Assembly: GCA_963924565.1 (NCBI GenBank)
Contig: OZ004607.1
Coordinates: 9,300,001 to 9,364,000 of the forward strand
DNA: 64,000 nt
Origin: Ascidiella aspersa
Taxonomy: Eukaryota
Direction: 5' to 3'
Shown: positions 27,515 to 63,516 of the stretch, in pieces
Numbering within the stretch: position 1 is the first letter of the stretch
Layout: each line of letters starts with the position of its first letter
The notes under the pieces: generated by a model
Databases searched by the model: none
Told to the model about the DNA's origin: nothing
The model's input: only the letters and a program-made list of their open reading frames with translations
Translations under genes and position numbers: made by a program

Positions 27515-29502
27515 TTATTCTTCGGACCTCATTTCGAAGCTGCTGTCCGAAACTAGGATTGGTCTTCCACGGTGGCGGATTGCGGAACGCGGACGAGGTC
27601 CGGACGGTTCCGCATTATCGCCGCGTCCCCGTGGAGCCTTTAAATGAATAACAATCTGGGGTTAGCATTGGAAGAATTGTATTAGTTTCAAGAGCGCCTT
27701 TAAGGGGATAATCTTTGTAAATGGCCGTATTTGTCTAATTCTAAATAGAGTAATCAAGTGACACTATGTAAAGCCAAACAGGTCTCAAAGTATACTTTAG
27801 CCTGATCAAGCACGGTTGTGCAAAAGCTTTTCAAGAATTTAAAGCAACTTGTCTTTACATAGTGCCACTTGATTCCTCTATTTAAGGGGATAACTGTCTC
27901 TAAACTGTACTTGAACTTTTTAAGTTATTGCTATTAAATTTAGTCATTCTCAAAATAAAAACGAATGACTATAATTAGGCCACACAATACGAATTTTTGT
28001 TTTTTAAATACGTTTAGTTTGAGGTAGAATTCGCAGATATTTTTAAAATTAAGGGCGCTCTAAAAGAATAGGCTAAAGGTTAATTAAGGACAATTCGTTT
28101 TTACATATTACTGACTTCAAGCCGCTACTAAACCGTCTGACGATGTTCTGCTTTCATATAAATGACGTAGGCCTATGGGTTGAGTTAGTAGGTCTGTTGG
28201 GTAATTTTGTTAAAGCGCGGTGTAAGAACGCCTAACATACATTACGAATGCCCTTAAAATACAATTATCTTCGGACTGTTCTGGAAAATAATCAAATTCA
28301 CTTTTTTTTTAAAAAAAGAATAAGTTTGATCAAGTCCCAGAACAGTATGAAGATTAGTTCGTTTTATGTACTAATCGTAATAGACATCCATTTTGCAATA
28401 GCAAAACGATATATTTTTGAGAACTTTTACTTCGATATCACCAAAAACGTTTCGCTTTTCCAATCAACACAGGTATGCTACGATATCAATAAATAAACAA
28501 AATACCAAAAAAACAACCAAACAATAGCAGGACGATTTCAAACACGAAAGGGTGCTTTAATGCGCGCAATTTGCTCTTATTTGGCAGCCACAAACTAGCA
28601 GCGTCTCTCTTATTTTCGACCTCAAATCACCCCGAGCGAAAATACTTACAGCGTTGGATCTGAGGAGATCGTCGTTGAAAGAACTGCTGTCGGGCGAATC
28701 CGAATCGAATCCCGAAAGGTCGTCGTCCGCCTTGTCAGGTCGCACTAGATTGGGAAGAAGTATTTCCTCGATGTTGCCTGTTTCAAGAAAAGCCTCATTT
28801 TAATTTTAGCAGCCCCGGGCTTTTGGCGCAATACGCTTATGGTGTGAAGTGAGTTCGTGCCGTGCGGTGTGGCGTGGGTTTTTTCGCTTGCAGTGCTCAA
28901 AACAAGTGGTTGTATGAAAAAGTGGTGAGATGCCTATCTTTGGTAAATAGCTTACAATGTTTAGATTGATAATAATTATTGAATGGCAAAACAGACGGTT
29001 TTTTTAAGTTGCCTCTCGAAAAAGCGGCTAAAAATGTTTTTACTAAAGCGAGCAGACTGTTTATCATAAATTCAATTGGCATATTACGGTCGGTCAAATT
29101 TTACTTTAAAGACATGTTGGTTTTATACGTTTCTTCGAAAACCTTTTAAAGCCTGTCAATCAAAATTAAAACATGTATGAGTAGGGTGAGTTTTAAAACT
29201 GTTCTTCAGTGACATTTGTGCCCAAGCATAAAACCATCTATTTCTGCAAATCGCTTAACAAACGTACCACACGCACGGGATTTTAGTTTCGAGGGCTCAA
29301 TACCCAGCGTCCGAAAAACAACAACAAAGGGGCTCACTTAAGCCCGACGGTAATTCCCACGTTAACCCCATTCACCCCTACCGTCGCCCCCGCCTGTGGG
29401 GTCCAGATTGTTTAGGAACTGTCGCTCGAGGAAGGCGATGCGAGATCTCAGCAATTCAATCGTCTTCCTCACTTCCGACATCTGGTCACGGTCGAGCGGC
29501 GC
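27515..29502 (-). CDS. Three 3' exons: EMID1/COL26-type C-terminal coiled coil, acidic segment, RGD-containing tail
   Basis: 29502-29382 [40 protein letters not shown]; 28777-28650 [43 protein letters not shown]; 27637-27515 [40 protein letters not shown]. Confidence 0.8.
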
Positions 29503-32500
29503 CTGTCACGTGATGCAAGTTGCGGTGATGTGGTGCGTGACGTTAGCGAGCAATAAACAGTCAACGCCGTATATGTTGATTCTATAGGCGCTACAGGTGT
29601 CGGTTTGGCGTGATAGTTTGTTGTGAGTCATTGGAACTAAGAGCCAAGACCAAAAGGCTTCCAAAGAACCCTAGGGCCCCGACTTTTGAAAACAGATTTG
29701 TGCCAAACTGAGTCGAAACGCGGCTATTTTGGTGGCTATTCTTGCCTCGGTTGAGCATCTTTGCTGCCAGCTCAGTCCGGGATTCGCCCTCTGATTTCAA
29801 TTACCGTGTGAACCTGTAATGTCGCCGCTGATTGATGTTCATTTTGGCGCAGGGAGTAGTATGCGTGTACGTGCGTGTGCAGCCAAAGTTTCAGTGGGAC
29901 AGGTTACTAGGACTCGGATGCCGTCTCGCCATTAGCTAACTCTTACTGCTCTACCAGCTTTTCACCAACACAGCGTTACAAAACGAATTATGTTACATAA
30001 CTAACTATAATGTAATCATGAACAGTTGAACACCCATCAAAGACAGGCAAGCGAGAAACTGTGGCAAAGTATATAGAAAAATATATCTTATACAGTTTTG
30101 CGGACGATTTGTTTTAAACGAGGTTCCATTTTAAAAATAATAAAGCCATAATATTCGACAAAATCGACATTTTTTGTTGTTGAGTATTGCCGTAACGATT
30201 GTGAACAACGAATTTTCCATTTTAGGTTAAATTGTTTTCTATTAAATTTCAAACTGGGAAGCCCGGCGCAATTTTTCCAATATCTAGACCTCCATTTTTT
30301 ATCATTTACATTTTACAGTCGAATTGTAGTCTTTATGAAAGTTGTCACAGTATTTGCCCAACGGAATTGAAAAAAAATAAGTAGATGTTTTCCTAAACCT
30401 AAACTTTTCAGTCGGCGATCCCAATTAACATTTTGCTACCTTTCATGTTTGACAGAGATAAGCAAAGCATTTTGTGATGTTTTTACTTCGGCAAGCGTTT
30501 GTTAAAATAATGTACAAGTCAGTTTAAGATGATTTTTTTAACATTAACAACGCAAAAGTTTCTCAATATAATGTAAAAGTTTCATACATTTCAATTTTTT
30601 GTGTGTCGCTGTCTTCTGGTCCTTTTCTTGCACAAGCCGTAAAACTTACACACACAAACTTGCCGCTTTTCTAAACAAATCTTTTATGTTTTATTCACCA
30701 ATGGTGAAAATGGAATGGAGGAAAAATAAGTGTAAAATTAAGTGAAAGAGGTAAGGGTTGTGACTGGGTTCTTCCCATTCGCCAGAAAGAAAACCGGGAA
30801 TGACTAAAAAAAATGGCCTGAGCCCAGTCCTAGGAAGCCGGTGCCGCCGGCAGGTAGGACCAGAGTTGGTACTGCACACAACCCTTTTGTTTGTGGTGTT
30901 GATTGAGGGAAAGTTTAATATCGTCCCGCTCATAACCAAATTTCCTAAGTCATTTTTATTGATTTTCAAAGTTTTTGATCCAGTCACTCCTTGTTACCAT
31001 CACCATCCACAGAAAGCGTGCTTGGGTCATTTTTAGGTCATTTCCCACTCGCTTGTGCAAAACAATGACTTAGGCACTTTTTCTATGGATGGGGATGGCA
31101 ACAAGGAATGACTTAGGCAAAACCTCTGAAAATCATAAAAAAATGACTTAGGCAATTTGGTTATGAGCGTGACGATATAGTGGTTAAGGTGAGTAAATGT
31201 TGGTATTATTTGTCTTTAGTTTCACTTCCCCCCCCAAAAAAAAAACAGGGTTCCCTTAAAATAAGCGGATTCTACTAAATCGGTTGACTTATTCAAATAA
31301 AAAGAACAAATATCTCCCTTAAAAAATCTTCCTTTAATGCCATTGATTAAGCGTGAAGTAGAATATCTGTGGGAACAATCCATGCCGATAAAACGTGTGT
31401 ATCGTGCATCATATCAGCGCCTGTGCATCGCTACATGCCGAGAATAACCTCGGTTTCGTTTCGGGCTACGTCCCCCTTTCGAGCCCCGCCCTTTCTTCTT
31501 AGCCAATCGCTGCTCGAGCTCGTCTAAGCGGGCGTTCACGGTGAAAGATAGAAGTAGAATCTCTGCCTTCATTTTTTGCAGTCGAACCCGCTGCATATCG
31601 GCGTATTAATAAATACAAATCTCGTGTTTGTTTTAACGCTTTAACTAAGGGGATAAGAAAAAGGTTATCTTTTGAATATTTAAATTTTTAACGACAGAAC
31701 TATAGTTTGTATTGCAAGATCTGTTTTAGGCAAGTATTTCCATTTTTAAAGAGATAAGCGTTAACCAAAATACCCCCAAGCCATAAATTATTTTTCACGT
31801 AATATTTATCTGAATTAGGGTTATAAACTTACGGAACTGCTGGATCTTGTTGCTTCTCCCTAAACAACAAATAAAACACGTTTAGCTTATACAAATGCTG
31901 TTGAAATTGAGTTTTAATTGCAATTGATTTACATTTAAATTCAACATATAAACCAACATCGTTTAAAAAAATTCCTTTAAAAGCTACGTTTGTTTTGTAT
32001 TTTATGCAACTAAGTTACTGTTATTGCAGTTTGAAAGGTTTTCCCTTTTATGCTATATAAAAACCAAGTTAACTGGTGCGGACATTTACTGTTTGTTTTG
32101 GAAATTTAGGTGTATAAAATAAAATTCGTCCTCACCTTTGATCCTTTTGGTCCTGGCTCTCCCTGAAAAGTTAAAACAAAATAGAATTAAAATTCCAGTA
32201 ATGCTTCCTAATATTATTTATTAATAGTGAACACTGCGATAGCTTTAATCATTTTCTGACTAAAATTATGAAAAGCAAATATTGTTTCACAGACAAGCCA
32301 TGTTGTTATAGTTTAACTACAAATACGTAAAATATGCATCCTAAGGTAAACTTGAACCCTTTGCCATCTTTACACTATTGCCTGAAAAGTCAGATGATGT
32401 ATAACGTAAACAGATTGGTTTATGCTTACCGTGGTTCCGACGCCGGGTATTCCTTGCGGACCCATGGGGCCGGCATCTCCCTTTTCACCCTTGGGGCCGG

Positions 32501-35500
32501 CGGGGCCAGCAACTCCTGACGCAGGACTAGCCAATTCACCGGTAAAGCCTCGAGGTTGGACGTCTTGCTCTGATAATAACGTTTGTTAGGTTTAACTTAG
32601 TTTTTTGTTTGGGTAACTTTACAGTTTCCAAACGGCCTAAAATGTCCCTTTTTTGGACAACCAAACAGCCTGGACTATATTGTAAGTCGAAACAACCATG
32701 GTAAAAAACGACTTTCCCCGGCGTAAATTATATACAGAAATTCAAAAAACGCTTTACATCAAAATTATGTAATAGAGATGTAGGAAATATTCATGAAGTT
32801 CCTGCTTTTGCAGCAGAATATGTATTTTGAAAGATCATTGAAGAGGTTGAGTTAAACCATTTCTGTGCGACAAAAATACTTGGGTCTTGAACTATAACAC
32901 TTCGTAGTGCGTGTGATTCGCCATTAAAAATTAAAAAAAAAACGAAGTTAAAACAATCGGTCGACATTTGGAAATCTTTATTTTTTTTAAAAGATCATTT
33001 AAGCGCCACAAAAACACTTAAAACCATCACAGTGCGTATAATTCATCTGAAGCAGGGGTTCTTGAACTATTTTTGCCGCGGACCCCTAAACATTTATTTT
33101 GCCTCGCGGGGACCACGGTTGGTCAAAAAATGTCAAAAATACCGTCATAAATTGACGTCAAGGTACAAATAGACTTCGTAAATTTGATGATTTCGGTTAA
33201 AAATGTAAAGTAAAATGAAGTCTATTCAGTGCAAAACCGTTTTATTTTTAATTCAACTGTTTTATTTAATAACTTGGTTACTTTTTAAATAACACTAATA
33301 TTTCAATTAGGCCTTTATGGACCCCCTAAAACTAGTTCACGGACCCCCAAGGGGTCCATGGGCCCCAGTTTAAGAACCCCTGATCTAAAGATTGAAAATG
33401 GCGGACAAATAAAAAAACAACTCACGGTTCAAATCGCTCTCAAGCGTGACCGAATAGTTGAACCCGTGAGCGCCGCAAACGTCCTGGCATTCCTCGGGCG
33501 TCTCAAAGTTGTTCCCGTTGCCCCGGCAACCGCCGTACACGAACACCGAGCAGCGTCGCGTCGCCGCGTCGAAGAAGTAGCGGTAGAGCGACGCGCGACA
33601 CGGACCTGCGCGCAGCGGTTCTGCGCAGGCCACCGGAAGCGCTCCATCGGCGGCGGGCAGGTCTTTGAGAGAAAAACATTTTTGTTAAAACAAACTTCGG
33701 AAATTATAGAACGTTTTATATAATTGTTGTACAAGGAGGGTGCAATCTAAAGATATTTTTTTAAGGTTTCGTTTTGGTTACAACTGATTTTTAATGCGAC
33801 TAAACATTACTGGGTATTATCACTTAAATTGGGAAATGTTTCGGATTTTTTTGACTTACAAGGGTTAGGTGGCGATACTTTTTTTCGAATTTGATCTAAA
33901 TTGACCTAAAAGTATTTTTGCCTTTTCCCAACATACAAGAAGGGAAAACTTAGTTTAGCCCAGGGGTTATGTACTGTAGTGTGAAATTATGCGCTATTTA
34001 GGCATATATGCGCAATTTACGAAAATCAACAACAACAAAACCATTAGTAAATCGACTGATTGTTTGTGTTTTGTAAATATTGTTGAACTTACAAGATCGT
34101 TTTTGATCGTTTTTAATGCATGCATTAAACACGTATGTTATAAATACACTGAGTTTAATTCCTATTATTACAATTTTATTTACTTCCGTCGGCCATTGTA
34201 GACAGGGGGTACGAGAAAATTTTTTGAAAGCTTAAAGGGTACAAGCGCTAAAAATGCTAAGAAACCCTGCTCTATCCTATTGGATAAACCTCCGACTTCC
34301 TTACGCACTTTCAATGTCTGTTCCTTTGGGCGACGCATTTCGTGAGCTGATGGTAGGTGGATCGGGTTTGTAAGGTTCAAACTCCAGGCTCGGTTCCCCG
34401 CCGCAGACCTTGGTGCATTGGGAGGCCTCCTCGAAGCGGTTGTCGTTGCCGCCGCAGCCTCCGTACACGAACACGTTGCATTTGTCGGTGATCGGGTTGT
34501 AGTAGAACATCGGGATGGACGCCTTGCAGATGCCCTTGATCCGTGGCTTGTAGCAGCGCTCTGGTAGAGTGTCCGAGTCTGCGAGAATAAGCGTGTTGTT
34601 GGGTTAGAGTTCCAAGACTTTTTTGGGTAAATTTGTTACGCTGCATGGGCAAATTAAGCGCTAAACTGCTTGACAGACGTATTTTTAAATCAGTGTGAAG
34701 CTTTAACTAAAGAACAATTATGTTTTCAATATCAGCTATTCGATTAAATGAATATAAATAGATGGGTACACTATGCACGAATCTGTAATGTAGCTTAATA
34801 ATAAATCGATTTTTTCAAAAATTTAAGGCGTCTTTTTGTAACTGGCCAAGCTCAGTTATGTAGGCATTGGACGTGTGACTAAAATATAGTTAACTTATAT
34901 AAGGCAGGTTTTCGCTATTCACCAAAAGAGATCTGCAATACGATAGCGCCGAGTTGGATGCCCGCAAATACAACATTTTTTGTGTTACACGTTGTTTACG
35001 TCTTTTTAGGTGGATAGAGCAAATAATTTTGAAGTATGAGCTTAGAGCCTAGATTTCACGAAAAATAAACAATTTAGACCCAAACTAGAAATCATGCCCT
35101 CCATAAGCCACTTTACTCTTCATTTACGTCGAAAACAAATCCTACCCGAATGCAAAAACGACGGCTCTTTTCCGCCGCAAGCGTCGCGGCATGCCCAGGG
35201 CGTGAGGAAGCGGTTAGCGTTGCCAGAGCAACCGGAGTAGGTGAAGAGCTTGCAGCGGTTCTCCTTGACACTGAAGTAGAATCGAGGGAATCTGCCCCGA
35301 CATGAGCCGTCCTTGCGGGGAAAGGTGCAGATCTTGGGCAGATCTAGCCTTGGGGCGTCGACTGGAAACGCAATAGAATAGTTTTAGGATGAGGCACCAC
35401 ACTTGCAAATGGGTTGTTTTGTTTCGACAGGCCTTGTAGGCTTATGTTGTATTTTCGGCGCTGGTCTAAAATCCTACCAATATTTTTAAGGTAGAGTTAC

Positions 35501-38500
35501 AACTTACACAACTAGTTATTGAAATTGGGAGAATACAAGAATAAATGCGCGACCCACCCGAACCCAAACGCTAACCCGTACCCCAACCCAACAATGTGGA
35601 CTGATTTAATAATCATTTGTTTGGGTTAGGGCGCGGGTTAGCATTTGGATTCGGTTTCGTTGCTGTTCCTAAAAAGAAAAGATTGTTGTAGGACCAGCGA
35701 CTCTAATTTTCCGATAGCAATAAAATGTGAAACTAGCACAGAAAGATAAACCATTGCACGTTTTGGTATAACTCTTTTTGTAATTTGACATTCCATTATA
35801 GCACATGTCTTGTAATAAATTACCAAACTCTTGTTTTAAGATAGTGGCGTTACTAAAGAACTTTAAAATGTGGAAATTTTGACACCTTTTGGTAGCAAAT
35901 CGCATTAACGATTGTGTTTTTAGATCTATTTTTATTCACATTCGTGTCAATTTGAAATAATCCTCATTAACAATGTTATAATGGCAATTTAAGAAATGTT
36001 ATAGCTTACATGAAAAGTAAAATTGTTATTTACCGACCTGATGCTTAACAAATTGGATGCTTTTTATTGCGCGTGATTGTACACCATATAATAGAAATCT
36101 CTTTCAGTCGAAAAAAAATTTAAAGGTATTTAAAACGAATATAACCTTACTGAAAGTGTCAACCGAATAATTTACGGTACACGAAAGGCCAGAGTTACAA
36201 AGCGATACAAAAATACAATGGTAATCTATTTTAAAATACCACCATCAAAAATATACCCACAACACAATAGGCGTTATTAAAAAAAGTTTGCAAAATAAAA
36301 TACAAAAACCCAGTGTGATGTTGCAAGGTAACTAAAACCGAAAAACAAAGTTAAAAATGTGATGATCGACGTGTTATTGAAATCATAAACAAAAATATAT
36401 ATGGGATTGAGCTTTTTCGTTTTTTTGTAAGATGGCTAAATAAAAACGCCCATAACATGAAGCCGCAAAGCAACGAAAACAAAAATATTGATTATTTTAT
36501 CGGCGCAGCTCCAAAAATATAAACAAAATGTGCTTGATTGCGCCGGGCGAAAGAGTCTTATGGCTTCGTGACAAACTTACTATTTTCGGGGGTAGAAACC
36601 CCGAAAATCATGTAGGGCCCCTGGCACACGCTCTCGCACTCGCCGGGGGTGTGGAACCGGTTCCGGGTGACCGAGCAAAGGCCCCGCGGCGCCCGGAAGC
36701 AAACATCGACCCGATAGTCGAAGTAATACTCGGGGAAAGTGTGATTGCAAGTGTCGAACTGAACCGCGTCCAGGCAGCGTCTTTGCGGCGGGTCGCCGAA
36801 GGCTGTTTTGAACATTTCAGTTTGACATGAGCTTTTACAGCAATAAACCAATAGGAGAATAAGCCAACAGTGTTGTAATGACTTAAGTTAATTAATTGGC
36901 ACTTGAGTCGCTGTTTTTAAATGACTTGACTTGACTTAAGTCTTTTGGATAAATGACTTGGGCTAAAATGAAGAGTTTTGATTAAGCAATTTTGGTAGAA
37001 AAATGGGTATTTATCCTAATTTTTTGGACACCAAAATCAAAACAAATTGCAAGAAACCGACGTAATGGAAAATAACGGTTGTTAAAGAATAATCTGTAAA
37101 TAATGATTGTTAAAGAATAAACTATCCATAAAACCGGGCACGTGTGTTTATTACCGTTGGTACGTCCGCATAAAAGATTTTAACTCGTAACTAAATCAAT
37201 CCACTGTTTTTGGAAAATGTATAGTTTTAATGTCAAAGAAAAATAAAAAAAAAGGGAATTTGTATTGGAGCTCTTTAGATGCTTTTCGTTTGTAAAAAAA
37301 CGATTTTTTACGTCAGAATTGCGCCCATGTTTCAAGTAAGGCGCTTCGAGCCAAACTATAGTATAATAATTTTACAGGCCCCCAAAAACGTTTCGTTCGA
37401 ATCAGTCGCCTTTTCTGCTGTCAAACTCAAATCACGATAATTTTTTTTAATATTTCTCACCTATTTCTGACGGCGGGGAAACCCCGATCGGTGGCGCACC
37501 GTCGATGCAGGTTCTCTTGCACAGCTCGGGCGTCTCAAAGTTGTTCGCGTTTCCCTCGCAGCCTCCGTACACAAAGCGCTGGCAGGTTCCGCTGGCCTCG
37601 TTGTAGTGGAACTTGGCGAACCGGCCTCGGCACGGACCCGAGTCGACTGGCAGTATACAGCGCGAGTCGGTCCCTGAGAAGGATTATATAGGTTTTCGGA
37701 TAATGTGGTTTTTCGGTTTTCTTGTCGGTGTCGTAACGGTGAGTCAATGTTTTTTAAACAATTGACTTGGCGTCGACTGTTTCGAATAGGGTTGATTTCT
37801 TGTGTCTATTTTGGTAGAGCAGGGGTTCATAAACTGGGGTCCATGGACCCCTTGGGGGTCCGTGAACTGATATTAGGGGTCCATGAAGGCCTAATTAAAG
37901 AGCTAGTGTATACTTAAAGTAATTAATTTTTAAAAGAAAACACTTTAATTCAAAATTAAACGGTTTTGCACTGAATGTATAGTTAGACTCCATTTAACTT
38001 TCACATTTTTCGGACCGAAATAACAGAGTCACGAAGTCTATTTGTATTGTGACGTCAATATATGACGTCATTTTGGAGCATTTCTTGTCTACCGGGGTTC
38101 ATGCAAAGCCAAAAAAAATTTGAGGGGTCCGCGGTGAAAAAAGTTTAAGAACCCCTGTGGTAGAGAGTAAGGCGTCCATTTTTACATTTAAATCCGTACA
38201 CTTTTCGGTTTTGACTTTTTTTGACCTTGCGAGCATTGTAGTCAAATAAACTTAGACCTACCTGTTATTAATTTTATGGTGTGATGATCTTTTTATTAAA
38301 ATTAAATGACTTTCTGAACCTTTAGGTTACAAATACTTCACTTAGGAGCAAAATTATCTTATTTGATTTGTATCAAGTTATAAGACAGCATTAAATGACT
38401 TGAATTAGGTCTTTGTTATAATAGTAAGAACTTTTTGCCCTGTTTATGGTTTAGTTTTCAGTGTTCTGGCGACTTAACTGCTGCCAAAGTGACCTGCCTG

Positions 38501-41500
38501 TCCTAAACGTTTGGTAAAGAATCGATGAGTTGACTTAGCCCTTTGGACAACTGTTATCGTGGAGCATGAAATTATTTTGTTCAGAGTTCATGATTTAAGC
38601 GTTGACTTTTGTTACTAACACAATTAAATACTTAAGGTATTTAAGAAATAACAATTTGCACGAACTATTAATGGATAAAATGAAATTGAATTAGGACTTT
38701 GAACCGCATTTGTTCTTCTGTCATTTCGAGCTCTGATGTTTTCGCAAATGCAATTAGATGACCGCAAAACGCGTCAACGTTAAACGATAAGCAATGACAC
38801 GCACCCCCATTAGTCGCAATCTAACGCTGACAGACGCGAGAGCGCTCCCAACTTAGAACGCCTTCAAATACCGCTATCTCGCCAATCGCTTGCCGCAAAT
38901 CCGAACTGTCAGTCTGTGATGTAGGACAGGGGCCTCGAAACACGCGATTCGGGGCCGAGTTCAAGTGCCTAACATCTATCATTTTTTCCTTAAGTCCCCA
39001 TTGAATCGCCCAGCGCATTCCAAGGTTAATAGGCTGCTGCTAGGATCGTGCAGTTATTCGTCAGTGCGTTGTGTACTAGGGACACGGGTGAGATCTGACT
39101 AAGCTCTTAAGCTGACGTGATGTTTTCTTCGCGTGTCAAAAAAACCTCCGAAGGGTCTGGGAATAATAAGATTGCGAAGTCGAAAGGAGTGGCCTAATTT
39201 GACGATTTTTTCTGCCAAGTTATTTAGGCGCCTTAGAAGAAAGTCGTCGGCTTTTCTTTTAAATCGACAAGGTCAGCAGCAAACCACGGATCTTGCAATT
39301 TTCTATAACCAATTAGTTCCCAGCAAACAGGAATTTACAGTTTCTTTGATAAAAAACGTTAAGGAGCTGGTTTAAAAATTTAGAGCTAAACATTAACGTC
39401 CTTCATACTATAGTTTGACTTGGAATTGAATCAAAATCATTTTCAGTAACGACCCAAATCAATCGATCCCTATTTGGGTTTGGTATAGTTGGCATTCAAC
39501 CAATTTCAACAAAAAAACTATTGATCTACTGCGACCTTCCTACTGAAGTTACATTTTTCTGCGAAAGCACTTTAAAAACGTTTAAACATGTAACTATTAA
39601 AAAAAATAGTTTGAATTAAAAGTGTATTTGGATATCCGTAAATAGAAGAATAACAAACGTTTTGAAAAACTTTATAAATCCCATTTTTTTTATATATTTT
39701 ATGACTGAAAAAGTGTGTTTCGAGACTCGACAACTTTTAAGACACATATAGAACACCCTTAATGCAATTGGACTTGACCGCAAACGGACTGGCACCGACC
39801 TTGCGGAGTCATGCGAGAATTGACTCCCGACAGTGGACACTGAGACGACTTCTCCACGGACCGCCTGGTCCTGTCCTCCACCCCGTCGTAGTCGTACTCA
39901 TACGCAGGATAATCTTCAGGAGGCCGCTCCGCGCTTCGCTCCTGGTGGGATGAAACGGAGGAAGAGGATGATGAAGATGAGGTCTCCTCCGATCCGTCGT
40001 CATCCTCGCCGCTTCCTGGAAGATGGTGAAAGAAGAAAATGTTGAATTTCGCAAAAAAACGAAAAAATAATTATAGCAAAGCCAGAAAGATATCCAAAGC
40101 AGAACCGGGGGCAAATGACTTTTAAACCCATGAAAATAGAGTCAGATACATATGTCTTATTTAGTAAAATATCGCTTCGCCACAAAGCTAACCGCTTTTA
40201 CCGATTGCAATCTTTCAATTGCCAACTTTCGATAAACGGCCACAAACTATTTTATCTATTTATTTACAAAACGGTGATGATTTTTAACGGTTGCAATCTA
40301 TCAAATTGTCAATGTTATTTTATAATATTTTGCAAAAAAATAACTTTAGATAAACGGACGCAAACTTTTTCCAAGGTGTCAGTGAATCATAGTAATTCGC
40401 ACTTTAAGCTATTAGGTTCAAGAATATTTTCTGTAGGACATTGTAATAGGTCAAACATAACCCTGTTTAACCAGGAAAAATTTATTTTGACAAAATTGAA
40501 GGGTTTTTAAAATGTGCAAAAGTCAACAAAGGTTTACTCAAAGGCTAACACTATGCTACCAATGTCTCTGTATGGGTGTATCATCGCAGTCACTTTAAAA
40601 TTGTTCGAAAGAGTTACACAAAATTTACTCCAACGCACGATTTACTAGCAATTTGTGCGAAGCTGAGGGGGTTACAGTTTGAGATGGTAGTTCTCTTATA
40701 AAGCCAATACCTTTCCGATGTTTTAACCTCTCACCTTCTCCGCTGCTTGCGTCCTCATCGGCCGGGCAGCAAACCTGGCAGCAGTAGCCCTCTGGCACGT
40801 ATTTGTGTTGGCAAGAGGTGGTCATCGGGCACTCGATGGAGAAGCAGTGGACGTCGCCGTCCAGGCAAACGCACTCAGTACAGGTGTCCGACTTCCACAG
40901 GTGGTTGTTGGCGTAAATTTGTCCCTCGTGTATGCACGCGTTCGAGCCTTTGGTGTCGATTGGGTGCGGGGAGGCAAGAAAAACAAAGTAGCATTGGTTA
41001 GATTTAGACGACTGAGGGCTGGTTGTTTTGTTTACTTTCGAAAAAACTACTCGGATCGTGATTGGCTGAGCGAAGCGAAACGTAACAAAGCGGCGTGATT
41101 CAAAGTGCGCGCTAGGTGGAGGCAAAGCGTGAATAATTTACTTTTGCAATGATTTTTTTTTGTTTTTGTCGCTAATGCAACCGATTTTGGCATAATTGTG
41201 TGGTAATTATTACCGCAGTCGATTATTAAGTTGAGTTTTTGGCGGTGTTGGCGAGAAATTAATCTTGCCGGTTGCACAAAAAACAAAAAGCAATGAAAAC
41301 TTACAAACTCGCAGGTTCGGCAGTTCTTGCAAAAAAATTGGAAAAATCCATCATTTGGATTGAAGTGCCTTAGGTTTAAAGGCTTTTAAGAATACACAAA
41401 ATGATCTAAATTCTTTACAAAACTAGCGCTAGGCAAGCTAAACAAGGTTTAGTCGCATCTAAGCAGGTTCTAATCTAATGCAACCCAATAGCCTTTGGTA

Positions 41501-50500: not shown

Positions 50501-53500
50501 ACAAACCTCGGCGGGCCGTTTATCGCCAAAGCAAACGCGGTCGGCTTTCTGTTTATTTTCGCCAATCAAGATTAGCTGCGCAGTTCCGTTGCCTGGTCAC
50601 GTCGGGGCCTTTTTTAGGCCAGTTTGCTTGGCCGATTTGCTAAACGGCAGGTTCCCTTTTCGAGAAACTTCTATTCAAGGCCCCTGGTAAATCGACAACT
50701 CGCTAGGACACTTTATAAATGTCCGATACTTTGTATTAACTCCGATATCGATACCCTGGTATTTTAGGATGAAAGTACCGCTGATCAGATCCGATACCAA
50801 ATGACGTAAATACTATATGCCTAATTCGGCAAAATTAAAATACTTGCTCTTGATGGAAAGAAAATCATTGGTGCTGGACAACTTCCCTTATTGTTGACAT
50901 ATTTAATGTAAAAATATAAAATCCTGATTTCTTGACTTTTTATTTCTTTTAAAATAGAACGCTCAGTTAAATTGGAAACAATCGTTGAAATTTTTCAACT
51001 AATTTGGATTGGCACAGATACCAGCCTAGTATCGGATATGTAACGACATTTCTACAATATAAATTTTCTTTCCAGAAGTCTACTATATTATTCTAAAATT
51101 TTTCTGGCATTTTTTACAATATTAAACACAGCTTTAAAATAGGAACCGGCCAAAAGAACTGGCCACTGTATTCGGCGCATAAAGCCTGATCGCATTGAAG
51201 GATTATGACTCGGCCTAAACAATTGGATGATTGCACGGATAGGCTCCCGACTACAAGGAGGTTTTAAAATCGGATTTTACTGGTAGCTTTGGTTCAAAGG
51301 TTAGATCATTACTGGTTTAAGTTTAGTTGTTCAAAGGATCTTTGCTTGTTTAGCTTTAGTTGGAATAATTTCAAACGAAACGCGTTTGACTCACGGTAAT
51401 ACTCAGCTACTAAGGGGTTTTGGTTTTTATTCACCCCTGTCCCTTGATGTTTCGCATCAAGGATTTTTAACCTGCATTGAAGCGCCCGCAGAAGCAGTCA
51501 GGGCGGGGATTCACCTGTTGAGAATTCCTTTGGTGATATCTCGAAACAACGCGATAAAAAGGCTGAGCTTTACATCGCTGTTTTCAAAAAAATATTTGTG
51601 GTTTAGGTTTTTTGACACGTTTTACTACTTTTTGGTAAAGTGGTTCAATCAACTTGTAATTTTTAGTTAATTGCAAAACTTTCAACGAAGAAAGCTCATC
51701 TTTTTCGATAGTAACTATATTCAACAAAATTGAGCTCAGTAGTCTTCCACTTTGAAATTGTCCACCATCTTTGTCCATAGATATGCCTATATCACCAGAT
51801 GTTTTTGTCCAGACTGAGTTTAAATTGAAGTTCGATAATTTCATTTTATCACGGCAAAGTTGAACTATGTATACTAGCCCAGGCTTAACACTAGACAAAC
51901 GATTCGAGGCATCTTATATTATATGTACTGCACTGTGAGGGCAGTTTCTTATGCTTGCCGCCAAGGAAGGAAACAAGCCGAAACGACGTTCACGTAGCGT
52001 TGTGCGTTTGGTCAAGTTCTAAATCCAAAACTTCCCGAAGCTTTCGATCCAAGCTAATATTTCCTTGTTTAGTATACGGGTGGTTTGGGCCAATTTTTGG
52101 AAGCCTGTTTAAGGCCTGTCACTTTATACTCCCTATATCACCGCATCAAAAGGATATCCTGATCACACCCTGGCTGTAGACGTTCCCGACAGCACACAGA
52201 CGCGCAGATCGTGGCGGAGATTAAACAGCCATTATTAAGTGTGCCAGTTTACATTTGCGCTTCGAAACCAGTCGAGGCCCTTTTTTACCGCTATCTTGTT
52301 TTCGTGTAGTTTTCGCCCTGTCGGTTTAGAATGGGACAGGGAAAATATGCCAACTCATCTGTCGCTGAGCGTATCAGTCACAGAATGGAGACGTGCTTTG
52401 TGCTGTAGCGAAATATACGTTTTCAATGATTAATTTTTAAATATGGGGATTGGGGATTTTTTATCGATTTACTTGTTAAGTAAAATCTATTAACTCAGTT
52501 CGTTTAAATATATATGTATTAGCCAATGGTAGAGTTTTTGAAGGATAGTAAGCCCAAGTACAAAGTAGAGGCCACGTGGCGCAATCTTTTTTAACATTTT
52601 GCTGGAATCTGTAAAATTGAATATTCCCGGGTTCGATCAAAAATCATTCCAAGTGTACGCCAATGAGTTTGCTCGTACACTCGGCTTGAATTTGCATATT
52701 CACTTGGCTCATGTTATATCAAAGTATTTGTCTTAAAGATAACTGTTTCGACCTTTTCGCGTAAGTCTAAAATATTGAAAAAATCGTGTTTTAATCATTG
52801 TTGAACTCACCTGTTGTGATAATTGCTCGACCTTCTCTTTGAGCGCTTCCACGATTGAGCAGTTGAAGCAAACTGCAAAAATTAAACAAAATATATTACA
52901 TATCGGTGTTGTGTTGTAAAGAAGTCACCTTTGAAATGAATTGATTCTAAGTTATGCCCCAAGTCATGTCAATATTATAGCAAGTCAACTTTAAGGCAAA
53001 TTACTCCAAAAAATGAAACGTTAAACTATTAAAATTTGGTAAAGTTGTTTGATTATGAAAAATTTAATAACTCAACTAAAAAATAACAAACATCCAACAT
53101 ATTACAAGCTAATTGTTTTAATTGCACAACTTCAAATCAATGTCCCAGAAGCCTTTAGAACAGATGTGACAATAAGCCAAGAAATGGTGTGTGACGAATT
53201 ACCTATACGCTCATGTACTTTGCAACGAAACGCGTATCCGTCGGCTTGATGGGACAAGGAAATGTCAATTACAAGCTTACATCCAATCGTGCGAAATGTA
53301 ATTGTGAAGGACTCCAGTCGTGGCTTGGAAATTTTCACACACGATTTCCATATTATGTCAACATCATTTTTGCCAGAAAGGGGAAGCGTCTTGACTTTGA
53401 TTGCTTTCGTGGTAAACGCTACGTGACAAAATCTAAAAGTGTGCGAACGTACGCGACTTTCAAAGAAATAAGAACTCGGCAGAAGTCTGACTGAAAAGGG

Positions 53501-59500: not shown

Positions 59501-62500
59501 TGTTCGAATTTTAAACTTATTGTAAGCCTTTTTTATGCTTTTTTCGTTTTGTTTGCTTTAATTAATTAGCCTCTTAACTGGGGGGTCTATGGGCCCCAAA
59601 GGTTTCAACATAGAGACCTATTGAAAGGGTCTACAGGCTTTTCTGTGATGTGTTACTTCTGTCGATAAGCTGCGAAAAAGCTCATAAACAAGTTTGAAAC
59701 AATGGCTATCTGATCAACGGAAAAAGTAGAAGTTAGGGCCGGTTTTGTTCTTCGCATTTATGATGTAGCTCCAGGGATAAGTCTTTTACTCGTATCTGTT
59801 CGGGGTAAATACATTATCCCAACAAACTTGGTGGTCCACGGACAAAAATTAGTTGCAAATTCCTGGTTTATTTGAATGAACAACAAATATTTTTACACTT
59901 TTATCTGAACCAATGATTTTTCGTTTAGTTTTAGTTTTGAAAAAAAAATTTGGCTTCGAGTTTCGCCTTCCTTCAAAAAGACGGCAAACATTTTTTCACT
60001 TTGAAATAGTTAAAAAAAATTTCTCGGAAAATACTAAGCGGATCGCTGAAAAACCAAGATTTGAAATTGTCTTGCTAGTTGGGAGAATTTGTTGTGTATG
60101 AAGCAACGAAGGTGCAACATTATTTTAAGCTGATTGTTTCTGTTTGTCGCAACAAGAAAGCACCGCCTTAACGTAATAATTTTACCTGACCTGGACAATT
60201 TGAATACTGTTCGGGTTTCCTAGAAATCGCTTTTAATACGATTATGCTATTTCATCTTAAAATAGTGTAAGAAGTGTGTAATACTTTAAGCCCAATGGTA
60301 TGAGACTATGTTTGTAAGCATTATGTAATTAGCTTTTCCAGTAACAAGTTAAAACTTAAAAATATAACCGTCAGAGGTTGGAGGTTGTGCAGTAAGAGGT
60401 AAAACCAATGTGACAAGATACAAAACTAGGTAGCATTGTGCAGCCTTTTCAAATTCATCTGAATCATTATGTGACTTTTTAAACAAATTATTCTATCTGG
60501 CGACACGGGTCATCAAGCTGAGAGGTCTGATACTGGATATTTTATTCCGATGCAGTTACCCGATATTTCGAACAAAAAGTATTGCTATCCATTTAGATAT
60601 CAATTGACGTCAATACTATGCTCAAATGTTCAAAATTATAAATTCGAACGTTAAAAAGCCTTTTTGTTTCGGGTAACCAGGCCAAGATTTTGGTTTAGCA
60701 TTTCGAAGTGTAGTTACCTTCAGTTGTTGAGCAATTATGTTTTAATAAATTCCGCTTTTATATGGCTGCTTTCGTTCGCAAATCGCAGCTGAAATTCCTA
60801 TTGGCTTGTTATCGGATTGGCACCGATACCACCCTAGTATCGGACTAGTACCGACCATTTTGCATCGGGTATCGACTTCGATCCAAGATGATCGGATATC
60901 CTTAGGTATAAAGTATAAAATATTGGATTCTGAAACATCAGACATCTCAAATCGTTTTTAGTATGGCTGTAATAAAAATCCTCTCAGACCGGACGATAAT
61001 GAATAGAACGACTTGGCATCCGGTATCGGGTACGATAGGATAATATTGGACAATTTAAAACGATAGTATATAGTAATCAATAATAAGTATCTTTATATTC
61101 CAATTTAGGTTAACACGTGAAACTCAATTCTCAACGCATTCTAGTGTAAGGTGATTAAAGTTGTTTCTTAAATGCCTCTTCTGCTGATAGGATATTATCG
61201 GATAATGTTAACAAGGACCTTCGCCGATTTCGGTCTTACCGTTGCTGCAGGTATCCCCAGAAAATCCGGGACAGCATCGCCACTCGTCCCTGGTAACAAC
61301 TGCCATGCGCGTCGCGTAGAGACGCCGACGGGCGATGACGTAACTGGAAATGTAAAGCAAGAGTTTGTAATCGCGAAATATAAATAGATATTTGACCGTG
61401 AAACGATAGTTTATACTGCAGGGGTAACCAACACGTGGATCGCGATATCGACTGGTCGATCCCTGCATTTCACCTGGTCGATCGCGTCCAATATGTGTTA
61501 CTCATTACAGTAGCTGCCTCACACAAGCGAAACATTAAACCAATTGTTGTCTGGACAAGCCTAATAAAGCCTTCTTGAACGTAACAAATTAACCTCCATC
61601 GCTGGCTTAGAATGCTATTAACGCTCAAAATGTTTAATAAGTGTTCTTGTGAATTTTTTTAATGAACCAGTCGATCGCGAGTCTTTAAAACATATTTCCG
61701 TCGATCGCAAGTTGGCTACACCTGGTATATAGTAATTAAATAATAGGTATCCTTTATGTTCCAATTTAGGCGATTTTAACAGGTGAAACTCAATGCTTAA
61801 CACATTCTTGTATAAGGTGACTCAAGTTGTTCATCAAATGTCAATTCTGCCAAAATCTTAGTTTCCTAAACCATTTTAAATTGCCTACATAGGTTTGAGA
61901 ACCTGGTGCACTAAAGGGCCACTACATCGAACTATAAAGAAGTACACAACTGCATTATTTACAATAGAAAACTCGTTCAACATGTGTTTTATTAAAAACT
62001 GTAAACAAATGAAATTTCGGTCTTGTGTTTTCGTTAAACAGCTTGAAGGTCCATGTGATTTAAAACAGGGAAAATGTCACGGAATGCGAAAGTGGTTAAT
62101 TGTTGCACAACTATAATCAATTACTATTAAACTATGTTGATACTAAGTAAACTAAAAACGCAGTTGTTATTAACTTATCGCTGGACGATAAGAGTTTCAA
62201 ATTGAAGAACCTCTTCCCAAAGCGGACCGCATCAGCCAAAGGACTCAATTCGGCAAGGGGACAGAAATGGGAATTCCCCGGGGAAATAGGATCATTCTGA
62301 CGTAGCGAGCGAATCATCACAATGCGATAATGTGCTGTCATGCGTTGCCAGCAAATCTTGCGACACGAGAACCCATTAACCGTGGAACGCAGATCAGTCA
62401 ACAGTTGCCCTATAATATCTTGTTGAGTGACTCATTAGCCCGGTTGTCGTTTCTGGGTGTTGAACGATGCCATTCAATCGTCGGGCGTGAAAACCGCAAG

Positions 62501-63516
62501 CAATAGGGCTTACGACACCACAGAGGTCTCTAAATTAAATCTAAGTCGACTGTTTGACCACAATGTCGTTTACCGTCCTTAATTATCCTGATAATAAAGC
62601 TGATTTTGTCTTTTTAAATAGGCGACATTGAGCCTAAATATAACCCTGATTGATTTGTACAGTTAAGTTCCAATTTGCAACGTCACATAGTCGATTCCAA
62701 GGCTATTTGGTAAACCACTGTTTGGTGGTTACATAATTCGCATTATAAGCATCCTTACTGGCGCGCTTTGAATTCGATTAAAGCTTCAGTAGTTTGGTTT
62801 TCAGATTATTTAGGGCCTTACTCATGGGATAAGAGGTGAGGTAAGGATGGATCTATTTATAATAGCCTACATCCATGGCAGCCTTGCCTACAAGCAGTAA
62901 TGTTTTTTTTATGAAACCGGCAGTTCAAGTTTAGGCAAATAGGCTACTGTCACTAGTTTACCTGTGTCCTAAAGCAAAACAAACGTGTTGTCATTTTACA
63001 AAATAATTTTTTTTTAATCTTAGGATTTTACGCAAAATAGACCTGTCGAAAAGTAAGAGCTTTGTCAAAAATTACATGTAAAAAGTTTTTAACTATTGCA
63101 TTTTGTTTTTTACATTCCAGCGTTCTACACGTTAAGACTCTTTTAAGTTTGAGATGGCGTCCGATAAAAAGCAATGCACTTCTACTATTTAGAACTATGG
63201 ACACATTTTAGTGGAAAATGCTATTTTTTATAAAAGTAGGACATGTCATCACTACAGATTTCTTGAAAGCCCTAAAACGCCTTTTTTCCTACACAAATAT
63301 TTTGAAACATATTTTCACCTGATAGTGGGGTTACAGTAGAGGTCGTTCCAAGGGCAATGCGACACCACCCTCTTCCGGTAGGTCTGTGTACCGTTGGTGA
63401 ACCTTTGAGGCACAAGCTTCTTCACAGGGTAGGCGCAGTAGCGGCCCGTGTAGATGGTCCGCTTGTCGACCGTATCCGGCACCAGTTCCAGGTTTCGCCT
63501 GCTGCTTGATGAGGTG
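27515..63516 (-). CDS. COL26A1: Collagen XXVI/EMID1-like mosaic protein: EMI - coiled coil - COL1 - MAM - VWC - acidic Ser-Gly linker - 5x Kunitz - COL2 - coiled coil - RGD tail (about 1270 aa in window; signal-peptide exon upstream of window)
   Basis: Minus-strand exons 63516-63319, 61343-61240, 52872-52811, 49009-48724, 48508-48446, 47753-47559, 43494-42739, 40947-40735, 40015-39800, 37673-37461, 36802-36581, 35361-35146, 34578-34309, 33662-33426, 32569-32430, 32162-32136, 31859-31833, 29502-29382, 28777-28650, 27637-27515. All are AG/GT flanked and phases match at every junction. The family call rests on EMI + CxNC coiled coil + two Gly-X-Y blocks + a C-terminal heptad segment. That all exons belong to one transcript is inferred. 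Confidence 0.8.
30921..31175. mobile_element. TA-flanked MITE with long inverted termini (Tc1/mariner-type target site)
   Basis: TA|TCGTCCCGCTCATAACCAAATTTCCTAAGTCATTTTT ... AAAAATGACTTAGGCAATTTGGTTATGAGCGTGACGA|TA. Confidence 0.75.
31414..31590 (-). CDS. Candidate alternative terminal exon: coiled coil plus Lys/Arg-rich tail
   Basis: Phase-0 acceptor ATGCAG, then [58 protein letters not shown]; a GC-rich, exon-like island in an AT-rich intron. Confidence 0.65.
   Translation of the reverse strand, partial: RVRLQKMKAEILLLSFTVNARLDELEQRLAKKKGRGSKGGRSPKRNRGYSRHVAMHRR
31833..32569 (-). CDS. Three exons forming short collagen segment COL2, including two 27-nt micro-exons
   Basis: 32569-32430 ..[29 protein letters not shown]; 32162-32136 GEPGPKGSK; 31859-31833 GEATRSSSS; canonical splice sites. 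Confidence 0.85.
33053..33382. mobile_element. hAT-like MITE, family copy A
   Basis: TIR CAGGGGTTCTTGAACT / AGTTTAAGAACCCCTG; TSD ATCTGAAG / ATCTAAAG (7/8). Confidence 0.88.
33426..33662 (-). CDS. Exon: Kunitz domain 5 (P1 Arg)
   Basis: [51 protein letters not shown]; 237 nt, phase 1-1. Confidence 0.93.
34309..34578 (-). CDS. Exon: Kunitz domain 4 (P1 Lys)
   Basis: [51 protein letters not shown]; 270 nt, phase 1-1. Confidence 0.92.
35146..35361 (-). CDS. Exon: Kunitz domain 3 (P1 Arg)
   Basis: [51 protein letters not shown]; 216 nt, phase 1-1. Confidence 0.92.
36581..36802 (-). CDS. Exon: divergent Kunitz domain 2 (six Cys kept, non-canonical loops)
   Basis: [51 protein letters not shown]; 222 nt, phase 1-1. 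Confidence 0.88.
37461..37673 (-). CDS. Exon: Kunitz/BPTI domain 1 (P1 Arg)
   Basis: [51 protein letters not shown]; 213 nt, phase 1-1. Confidence 0.93.
37820..38157. mobile_element. hAT-like MITE, family copy B, inverted relative to copy A
   Basis: TIR CAGGGGTTCATAAACT / AGTTTAAGAACCCCTG; perfect TSD TGGTAGAG; body is the diverged reverse complement of 33053-33382. Confidence 0.9.
39800..40015 (-). CDS. Exon: acidic Ser-Gly / poly-Ser / Tyr-acidic linker with RTRR site
   Basis: [72 protein letters not shown]; strong polypyrimidine acceptor TTCCAG, donor AAG|GTCGGT; 216 nt, phase 1-1. This frame is not in the ORF track. Confidence 0.8.
40735..40947 (-). CDS. Exon: von Willebrand factor type C (VWC/chordin-like CR) domain
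   Basis: [57 protein letters not shown], with CxxCxC and CCxxC motifs; 213 nt, phase 1-1. Confidence 0.92.
42739..43494 (-). CDS. Exon: MAM domain with insertions (756 nt, phase 1-1)
   Basis: SCDFD...MCLF...W...GTLSSPFF...ICMTFRY...LQVYL...WRRTAVPL...FQVIFEA...[11 protein letters not shown] matches the MAM pattern; acceptor GCGCAG, donor GTGAGT. Confidence 0.88.
44345..44808. mobile_element. hAT-like MITE with an internal tandem duplication of about 73 bp
   Basis: TIR CAGGGGTGGATTCAGG / CCTGAATCCACCCCTG; TSD GTCTTTAC / GTCGTTGC (6/8); ATAAATACAGTCTAGGGCTAG...CAATCTAGAGAT occurs at about 44464 and 44537. Confidence 0.8.
47559..49009 (-). CDS. Three exons forming collagen triple-helix segment COL1
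   Basis: 49009-48724 [25 protein letters not shown]...[12 protein letters not shown]; 48508-48446 [21 protein letters not shown]; 47753-47559 [65 protein letters not shown]. Confidence 0.93.
47818..48197. mobile_element. Older MITE family with CCGATAC/GTATCGG subterminal motifs; relatives near 15225-15604, 20643-21001, 49370-49450, 50146-51050, 60520-61050
   Basis: Ends TAGGGATGTCC / GGACAACCCTA; shared internal sequence (GATACC..TGACGTCAT..CAGTTGTTAA) across copies; TSDs decayed. Confidence 0.65.
52811..52872 (-). CDS. Exon: CxNC plus short coiled coil following the EMI domain
   Basis: [21 protein letters not shown]; acceptor TTGCAG, donor GTGAGT; phase 1->0 bridges the neighbouring exons. 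Not in the ORF track. Confidence 0.85.
56270..56925. repeat. Diverged tandem duplication, unit about 350 bp
   Basis: Shared blocks TGTATCT, TACATTGGT, GGTCGTTGAAC, ACCCCTGTTT, GTAAGTA, GAATGTTAACC and ATAGTTGTATGGAGAAA occur in the same order in both units. Confidence 0.75.
58745..59165. repeat. Diverged tandem duplication, spacing about 260 bp
   Basis: AAAAGAAGG..AACAGACACA..GGCG.CCAA.TGACA..GGATTTTT..ACAAGAA..CAAGCATT..GCCGTGTAT occurs at about 58789 and 59051. Confidence 0.7.
61240..61343 (-). CDS. Exon: C-terminal half of EMI domain
   Basis: [35 protein letters not shown]; WRCCPG(F/Y)xGxxC is the EMI signature; acceptor TTCCAG, donor GTAAGA. Confidence 0.92.
61419..61724. mobile_element. 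hAT-like MITE with GATCG repeats
   Basis: Ends CAGGGGTAACCAAC / GTTGGCTACACCTG; subterminal GTCGATCGC repeats; TSD weak. Confidence 0.6.
63319..63516 (-). CDS. Exon: N-terminal half of EMI domain
   Basis: ..[44 protein letters not shown]; acceptor AAACAG, donor GTGAAA; resembles the EMID1/COL26A1 EMI start (C..NGT..CPW..C). Confidence 0.85.

Follow-up and report, generated by a model that had tools for sequence, protein, structure and literature searches.

Collagen XXVI has been described, echinoderms included, as a chain with an EMI domain and two triple-helix sites only, and the Kunitz-bearing collagens as chains with VWA domains in which a single Kunitz domain stands at the C-terminus (PMC10381214). 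It is well known that ascidian matrix genes can have extra domains and that matrix genes in general undergo exon shuffling (PMC3308698). Here, exons of a collagen XXVI/EMID1-type gene are described from the sea squirt Ascidiella aspersa, in which eight same-strand exons encoding a MAM domain, a VWC domain, an acidic linker and five Kunitz domains lie between those for the two collagen segments, COL1 and COL2. The locus was analysed in a 64,000-nucleotide stretch of DNA, hereafter the window (GenBank assembly GCA_963924565.1, contig OZ004607.1, positions 9,300,001 to 9,364,000; G000:C1:9300001-9364000 in our own numbering), which contains 0 N letters and is part of a 308.6-Mb assembly of 75 contigs; positions below are those of the window. 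The account that we favour, with reasonable but far from full confidence, is one minus-strand transcription unit of the collagen XXVI/EMID1 type that carries the eight exons as an insert between COL1 and COL2.

Results

Exon chain and domain content

Fifteen minus-strand exons, running from 63516 to 32430, were rebuilt with simple weight matrices for acceptors and donors and the sequence of a distant relative as guide, and the chain was checked exon by exon. All 15 have AG/GT borders and none contains an in-frame stop; the incoming phase equals the preceding outgoing phase at each junction, and 0 junction codons are stops. The phases run 2>2>1>0>1>1>1 and then remain at 1 all along to COL2 (1>0). 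An earlier, sequence-only reading of this DNA had proposed a one-frame chain of twenty exons, of which the 15 from EMI to COL2 were recovered while the count of twenty was not reproduced; downstream of COL2 there are several frame-compatible choices of 3' exon, either 31590-31417 or 29502-29376, 28744-28631 and 27552-27515. COL1 amounts to about 50 Gly-X-Y triplets in three exons, and because the Gly-X-Y register is unbroken over COL1a/b and COL1b/c and the split codons are Gly, these two junctions are independently validated. The possibility of dead exons was rejected, all exons being open, with intact cysteine patterns, and kept in the relative.

Domains were called exon by exon with Pfam profiles (EMI cut-off 25 bits), and EMI, collagen, MAM, VWC and five Kunitz domains were all found on the minus strand at the places where the sequence-only reading had put them (Table 1). 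The N-terminal EMI domain typical of EMID1 and collagen XXVI is present as two exon halves scored singly: EMI exon 2 matches profile positions 40-69 with 26.6 bits, EMI exon 1 taken alone has no Pfam match and its protein-atlas look-up returned no usable match, and the relative's two EMI exons match profile positions 2-39 and 40-69. COL1 and COL2 supply the other hallmark of that family, i.e. two Gly-X-Y segments with a non-collagenous stretch between them; a weaker Pfam Collagen match covers 48524-48375. The coiled coil previously proposed ahead of COL1 comes down to a single 20-codon exon with about two heptads. Pfam gave no gC1q or EGF match on the open segments downstream of COL2, and no VWA match on any exon of the gene. 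The MAM exon and EMI exon 1 are both single copy in the genome (G000). The sole other EMI exon found there, at C2:20798308-20798409 on the plus strand (loci L007-L009), is followed by EGF-like exons and no collagen; it is part of another gene of the EMI family.

The insert comprises eight exons and 2343 nucleotides (781 codons), every exon being of phase 1-1 and a multiple of three in length. Its two flanking junctions, 47559>43494 and 33426>32569, are both in phase 1, so the matching phases claimed for the inner exons were found. COL1b and COL1c are phase 1-1 exons too, and since all eight insert exons share this property the agreement is weak evidence at these junctions in particular. The direct junction 47559>32569 would be equally in frame, with GAG as its junction codon, and any subset of the insert could be skipped without loss of frame. 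There is a modest chance, which we put well below the favoured account, that alternative splicing treats the insert as a cassette, the main product being a short EMI-COL1-COL2 chain and the insert exons, or subsets of them, being limited to certain tissues or stages. Several insert acceptors score below those of EMI and COL1, and the collagen XXVI of echinoderms and vertebrates has no insert (PMC10381214), both of which fit such a cassette. Neither form was seen in RNA run X5 (0 reads on the exons), however, and the insert exons are open and evidently constrained in two distant species, hence used in some form. The cassette also overlaps with the account of one unit, from which it differs just in how often the insert is included.

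Conservation in a second species

The comparative material consists of two metagenome contigs, L001 and L002, both from one distant relative (42-63% amino-acid identity) and both ending shortly past Kunitz 1, so that the comparison covers EMI1 to Kunitz 1. On these contigs EMI1, EMI2, the CFNC/heptad exon, COL1a, COL1c, MAM, VWC, the linker and Kunitz 1 follow each other in the same order on a single strand. The relative's domains were confirmed by Pfam (43.6 bits for VWC), and identity to the window is 57% for EMI1, 63% for EMI2, 57% for COL1c, 42% for MAM, 47% for VWC and 55% for Kunitz 1. A second species thus repeats, up to Kunitz 1, the exon order that had been read as one gene from EMI and COL1 inwards. 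An assembly artefact was also considered and rejected: DNA runs span the region and the same exon order is present on 2 independent contigs of the relative.

The introns of the window and those of the relative can no longer be aligned. The phase-1 COL1c donor (G|GTAAG) is nevertheless found at the homologous codon in the two species, an argument for its being a donor in use. The acceptors of MAM, VWC and Kunitz 1 are likewise at homologous codons in phase 1. The conserved donor bears directly on the idea that two tandem genes have been misjoined, with EMI-COL1 ending after COL1c and a second gene extending from MAM through Kunitz 5 to COL2 and the tail. Read-through past the COL1c donor would indeed reach a stop after 8 codons, and nothing in the RNA contradicts such an end (0 reads on the exons), but a donor conserved amid unalignable introns speaks against it and the second gene would need an unseen first exon; we consider this arrangement very improbable.

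The COL1c>MAM intron measures 4 kb in the window against about 1.1 kb in the relative, and no conserved exon or coding block was found in it between the two. A same-strand nested gene would have to place its own promoter and signal-peptide exon here and its poly(A) site after Kunitz 5, with the host transcript splicing over the whole. The long upstream intron with its GC-rich single-copy patch would suit a nested gene, as would the weak signal-peptide-like open reading frames (ORFs) found in the intron of both species, and read-through past the donor of Kunitz 5 would run for 13 codons up to a stop, with AATAAA/ATTAAA motifs 160-180 nucleotides downstream. The ORFs, however, are different and unconserved between the species, and the phase-1 donor that they require is missing in L002 and poor in the window; the poly(A)-like motifs belong to an AT-rich cluster and are about as frequent as expected by chance; and, from general knowledge of exon definition, eight usable same-strand exons should be hard for the host to skip. 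A nested gene is consequently the less likely arrangement when set against one transcription unit, and in absolute terms we think it unlikely, more so than a cassette. A CpG-island promoter in this intron was rejected, CpG islands carrying no signal here because the window-wide CpG observed/expected ratio is 1.09. The GC-rich patch has no Pfam match and no second copy in G000, and it is not conserved in the relative's intron.

The COL1c donor needs a phase-1 acceptor, the MAM acceptor needs a phase-1 donor and COL2, which begins in phase 1, cannot be a first exon; the simplest account is therefore one unit in which the insert is included always or sometimes. The presence of all parts on a single transcript is supported in this sense, and several observations weigh on the other side. 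The uniform phase 1-1 of the eight insert exons is what a nested gene or a skipped cassette would show too, the pyrimidine tract ahead of the MAM exon is weak, and the 4-kb intron contains the GC-rich single-copy patch (45800-46000 of the window). At the 5' end, the 10 kb upstream of EMI exon 1 yielded no convincing signal-peptide exon (a start with a phase-2 donor); at the other end, the comparison with the relative stops after Kunitz 1, where both contigs end, and so short of the Kunitz 5>COL2 side. No spliced or annotated protein containing the MAM exon of the window was found among 1.84 billion representatives, nor in the 90% clusters, where the MAM segment matched P0002 only. Reads were mapped over 42650-48649 only, from three runs: X5 (RNA, about 6% of its reads), X4 (DNA-like, low coverage) and X1 (DNA). 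X5 gave 0 reads on COL1b, COL1c and the MAM exon and 0 joints, its reads falling on short high-copy repeats alone. The zero counts show low or absent expression in the X5 sample and are uninformative on the splice pattern.

Three short intronic elements (46915-46992, 47817-47851 and 48255-48288) took all of the mapped RNA reads, and their DNA-run depth is in the thousands versus about 110 where the sequence is single copy. Two intronic stretches, of 64 bases (43746-43811) and 119 bases (47851-47971), are skipped by contigs of DNA run X1 and are probably indel polymorphisms.

MAM domain, VWC domain and acidic linker

All protein searches used single exons as queries. With the MAM exon, phmmer returned nine clusters of single-exon ORFs from the 1.84 billion representatives at 24-51% identity, which have the N-terminal cysteine motif of that exon and end at the same exon border; the long matches were multi-MAM proteins. 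Scans of genome contigs and viral contigs found no relative. An AlphaFold2 model of the MAM exon has a core with a predicted local distance difference test score of 80-89, and its best Foldseek matches are the MAM domains of neuropilin-1, SR-C, PTPRK, PTPRM and meprin, so that the model confirms the MAM jelly-roll fold. It opens with a Ser/Thr/Pro-rich linker, not with a start codon and signal peptide, and this composition continues that of the COL1c tail.

The first and second cysteines of the MAM domain enclose a loop with a polybasic furin-type motif (window ~43330-43260), and this loop is disordered in the AlphaFold2 model. The homologues P0002, P0003, P0008 and P0011 have it as well and P0007, P0012 and P0016 do not, i.e. 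it is kept in 4/7 homologues that cover the loop. In both species a second polybasic motif, followed by Cys-Pro, stands at the end of the linker (window ~39880-39860; L002:14201-14455), with a conserved acidic tyrosine cluster just upstream; the relative's linker at L002:14201-14455 was recognised by composition, as a Tyr/acid cluster and RRKR-S. The Ser-Gly sites of the linker have acidic residues on their flanks. Judged from sequence, the polybasic motifs in the MAM loop and at the linker end suggest proteolytic processing, and the acidic tyrosine cluster is likely to be a sulfation site. BMP binding by the VWC domain and adhesion by the MAM domain may be expected by analogy with their domain families. 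Adhesion had also been proposed for an RGD motif, which lies in COL1c; this did not hold up as a functional site, the relative's COL1c exon lacking a counterpart, and the RGD is probably incidental.

Kunitz domains

The spacing C-8-C-15-C-7-C-12-C-3-C is found in 5/5 Kunitz domains, and a basic P1 residue (Arg or Lys, as in trypsin-type inhibitors) in four of them. Pairwise identity among the five is 27-49%, which marks them as old duplicates. The serine-protease inhibition previously proposed for the protein is supported by these signatures as far as motifs can tell, with the exception of Kunitz 2, whose P1 is Asn and which is without the YGGC motif. Genome-wide, Pfam detected 16 Kunitz exons. 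This gene accounts for four of these, Kunitz 2 having been missed by that search. Other tandem clusters of Kunitz exons are present on the minus strand at G000:C2:24017838-24022957 (four exons) and G000:C1:14185199-14185817 (two). A GC-rich palindrome-like element in the Kunitz 5>COL2 intron (~33390-33310) recurs at ~37800-37900 with similar peptides, and looks like a dispersed short repeat.

Table 1. Features of the window, in gene order for the collagen-type gene, with neighbouring features last. Phases are incoming and outgoing; L002 coordinates refer to the contig of the relative.
Feature	Position	Strand	Phase and splice sites	Matches and conservation
EMI exon 1 (N-terminal half of EMI)	63319..63516	-	phase 2 in/2 out, open, AG/GT	L002:182-376, 57% identical
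EMI exon 2 (C-terminal half, WRCCPG motif)	61240..61343	-	phase 2 in/1 out	L002:1377-1499, 63% identical
20-codon exon, CFNC motif and short heptad stretch	52811..52872	-	phase 1 in/0 out, donor score 11.9	conserved at L002:4506-4565
COL1 exon a, 29 Gly-X-Y triplets	48724..49009	-		Pfam Collagen 60.6 bits; counterpart L002:6353-6859
COL1 exon b	48446..48508	-	phase 1-1; Gly-X-Y register runs on over both junctions	
COL1 exon c, end of triple helix, GVCxC motif, Ser/Thr/Pro-rich tail	47559..47753	-	phase 1-1	Pfam Collagen 32.1 bits; L002:8617-8841, 57% identical
GC-rich (0.61) single-copy patch in COL1c>MAM intron	45800..46000	.	open in all three minus-strand frames	
MAM exon, 251 codons, polybasic loop and acidic loop	42739..43494	-	phase 1-1	Pfam MAM 44.5 bits, profile positions 41-155
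VWC exon	40735..40947	-	phase 1-1; acceptor conserved in L002	Pfam VWC 46.5 bits, profile positions 1-57 of 57
Acidic linker exon: Ser-Gly sites, poly-Ser, acidic Tyr cluster, then RxxR site, Cys-Pro	39800..40015	-	phase 1-1	
Kunitz 1, P1 Arg	37461..37673	-	conserved acceptor	Pfam 74.8 bits; L002:15581-15760, 55% identical
Kunitz 2, divergent, P1 Asn, YGGC motif lost	36581..36802	-		Pfam 25.3 bits; canonical Cys spacing
Kunitz 3, P1 Arg	35146..35361	-		Pfam 61.6 bits
Kunitz 4, P1 Lys	34309..34578	-		Pfam 67.0 bits
Kunitz 5, P1 Arg	33426..33662	-		Pfam 73.1 bits
COL2 exon, 9 uninterrupted Gly-X-Y triplets	32430..32569	-	phase 1 in/0 out	Pfam Collagen 20.5 bits, under cut-off
Candidate terminal exon, heptad stretch and basic tail	31417..31590	-	phase-0 acceptor, open to stop	no Pfam match
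Candidate alternative 3' exons: heptad, acidic stretch, short tail	27515..29502	-	frame-compatible acceptors/donors	no Pfam match
TFIP11-like gene, G-patch and GCFC	10992-20600	+		neighbour, convergent with the collagen gene
tRNA match inside TFIP11-like gene	11910-11984	+		
GH20 hexosaminidase-like exon	2550-2861	+		neighbour

Neighbourhood

The TFIP11-like neighbour (Table 1) may hint at old synteny, human TFIP11 and EMID1 both being on 22q12. The genome also has a GH6 exon (28.1 bits), in keeping with an ascidian source, since in animals GH6 is not known outside the tunicate cellulose synthase.

Discussion

The gene is probably of the collagen XXVI type, in a form altered by exon shuffling and specific to its lineage, and its product is probably a trimeric matrix protein with Kunitz inhibitors. 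Under the account of one transcription unit, eight symmetric phase-1 exons would have entered the phase-1 COL1/COL2 intron by exon shuffling, before the split from the L001/L002 lineage, and at least one form of the mRNA would carry them. From the exon chain and its domains we infer joint splicing, trimerisation, secretion, inhibition and processing. The chain encoded by an mRNA with the insert would be secreted and about 1200-1300 residues long; in it, the two triple-helical segments and the heptad stretches may bring about trimerisation and the EMI domain higher-order assembly. Each chain would present a MAM domain, a VWC domain, an acidic linker, probably tyrosine-sulfated or glycanated, and five Kunitz modules, of which the 4/5 with Arg or Lys at P1 could act as trypsin-type serine-protease inhibitors held in the matrix; convertase-type cleavage of the chain might take place at the polybasic motifs. 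A bolder proposal, offered tentatively and with somewhat less than even expectation, is that the gene represents an old tunicate-specific class of collagen, i.e. a trimeric, convertase-processed, tyrosine-sulfated scaffold with up to fifteen Kunitz domains together with MAM and VWC domains, which controls serine-protease cascades in the matrix of the tunic, epidermis or blood vessels.

If the exons are spliced together, the locus is a clear natural case of exon shuffling, in which an old collagen gene has taken up a full symmetric phase-1 cassette in an intron of the same phase, and two or more distant sea-squirt lineages have retained it. The locus would also provide a collagen with protease inhibitors displayed as a multivalent array, which is uncatalogued for EMI collagens. 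It would point to a directly testable hypothesis, namely that tunicates control trypsin-type proteases by inhibitors anchored in the matrix and processed at the conserved polybasic sites. No report of an EMI-collagen-MAM-VWC-Kunitz architecture was found in the literature, and the view that no described protein has this architecture was upheld there and, with the MAM exon as query, among the 1.84 billion representatives.

The closest described systems are collagen XXVI (COL26A1/EMID2) and EMID1 of the Emu/EDEN family, with which the gene shares an N-terminal EMI domain followed by two Gly-X-Y segments and the lack of gC1q and EGF domains. It departs from them in the 781-codon block of MAM, VWC, linker and five Kunitz domains and in a predicted chain about three times longer, and the collagen XXVI trait of having no other globular domain would not apply here if MAM, VWC and Kunitz exons are spliced into the same mRNA. 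Like the Kunitz collagens VI alpha3, VII and XXVIII, the gene combines a triple helix with a Kunitz/BPTI module, whereas here there are five such modules, all internal, an N-terminal EMI domain and no VWA domain. Papilin is a multi-Kunitz matrix protein with TSP1 and ADAMTS-spacer domains and with no collagen helix, EMI, MAM or VWC domain; a tandem Kunitz array in a secreted matrix protein is common to both, but none of the defining domains of papilin is seen in the window gene. The ascidian proto-fibronectin and proto-VWF (Hynes 2012, PMC3308698) offer a parallel at the level of process, as chordate matrix genes with domains added by exon shuffling, albeit in different gene families and in an account that does not include the present architecture. 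Invertebrate deuterostomes commonly have matrix architectures that are specific to one lineage (PMC3308698), and the gene described here extends this known pattern rather than overturning it.

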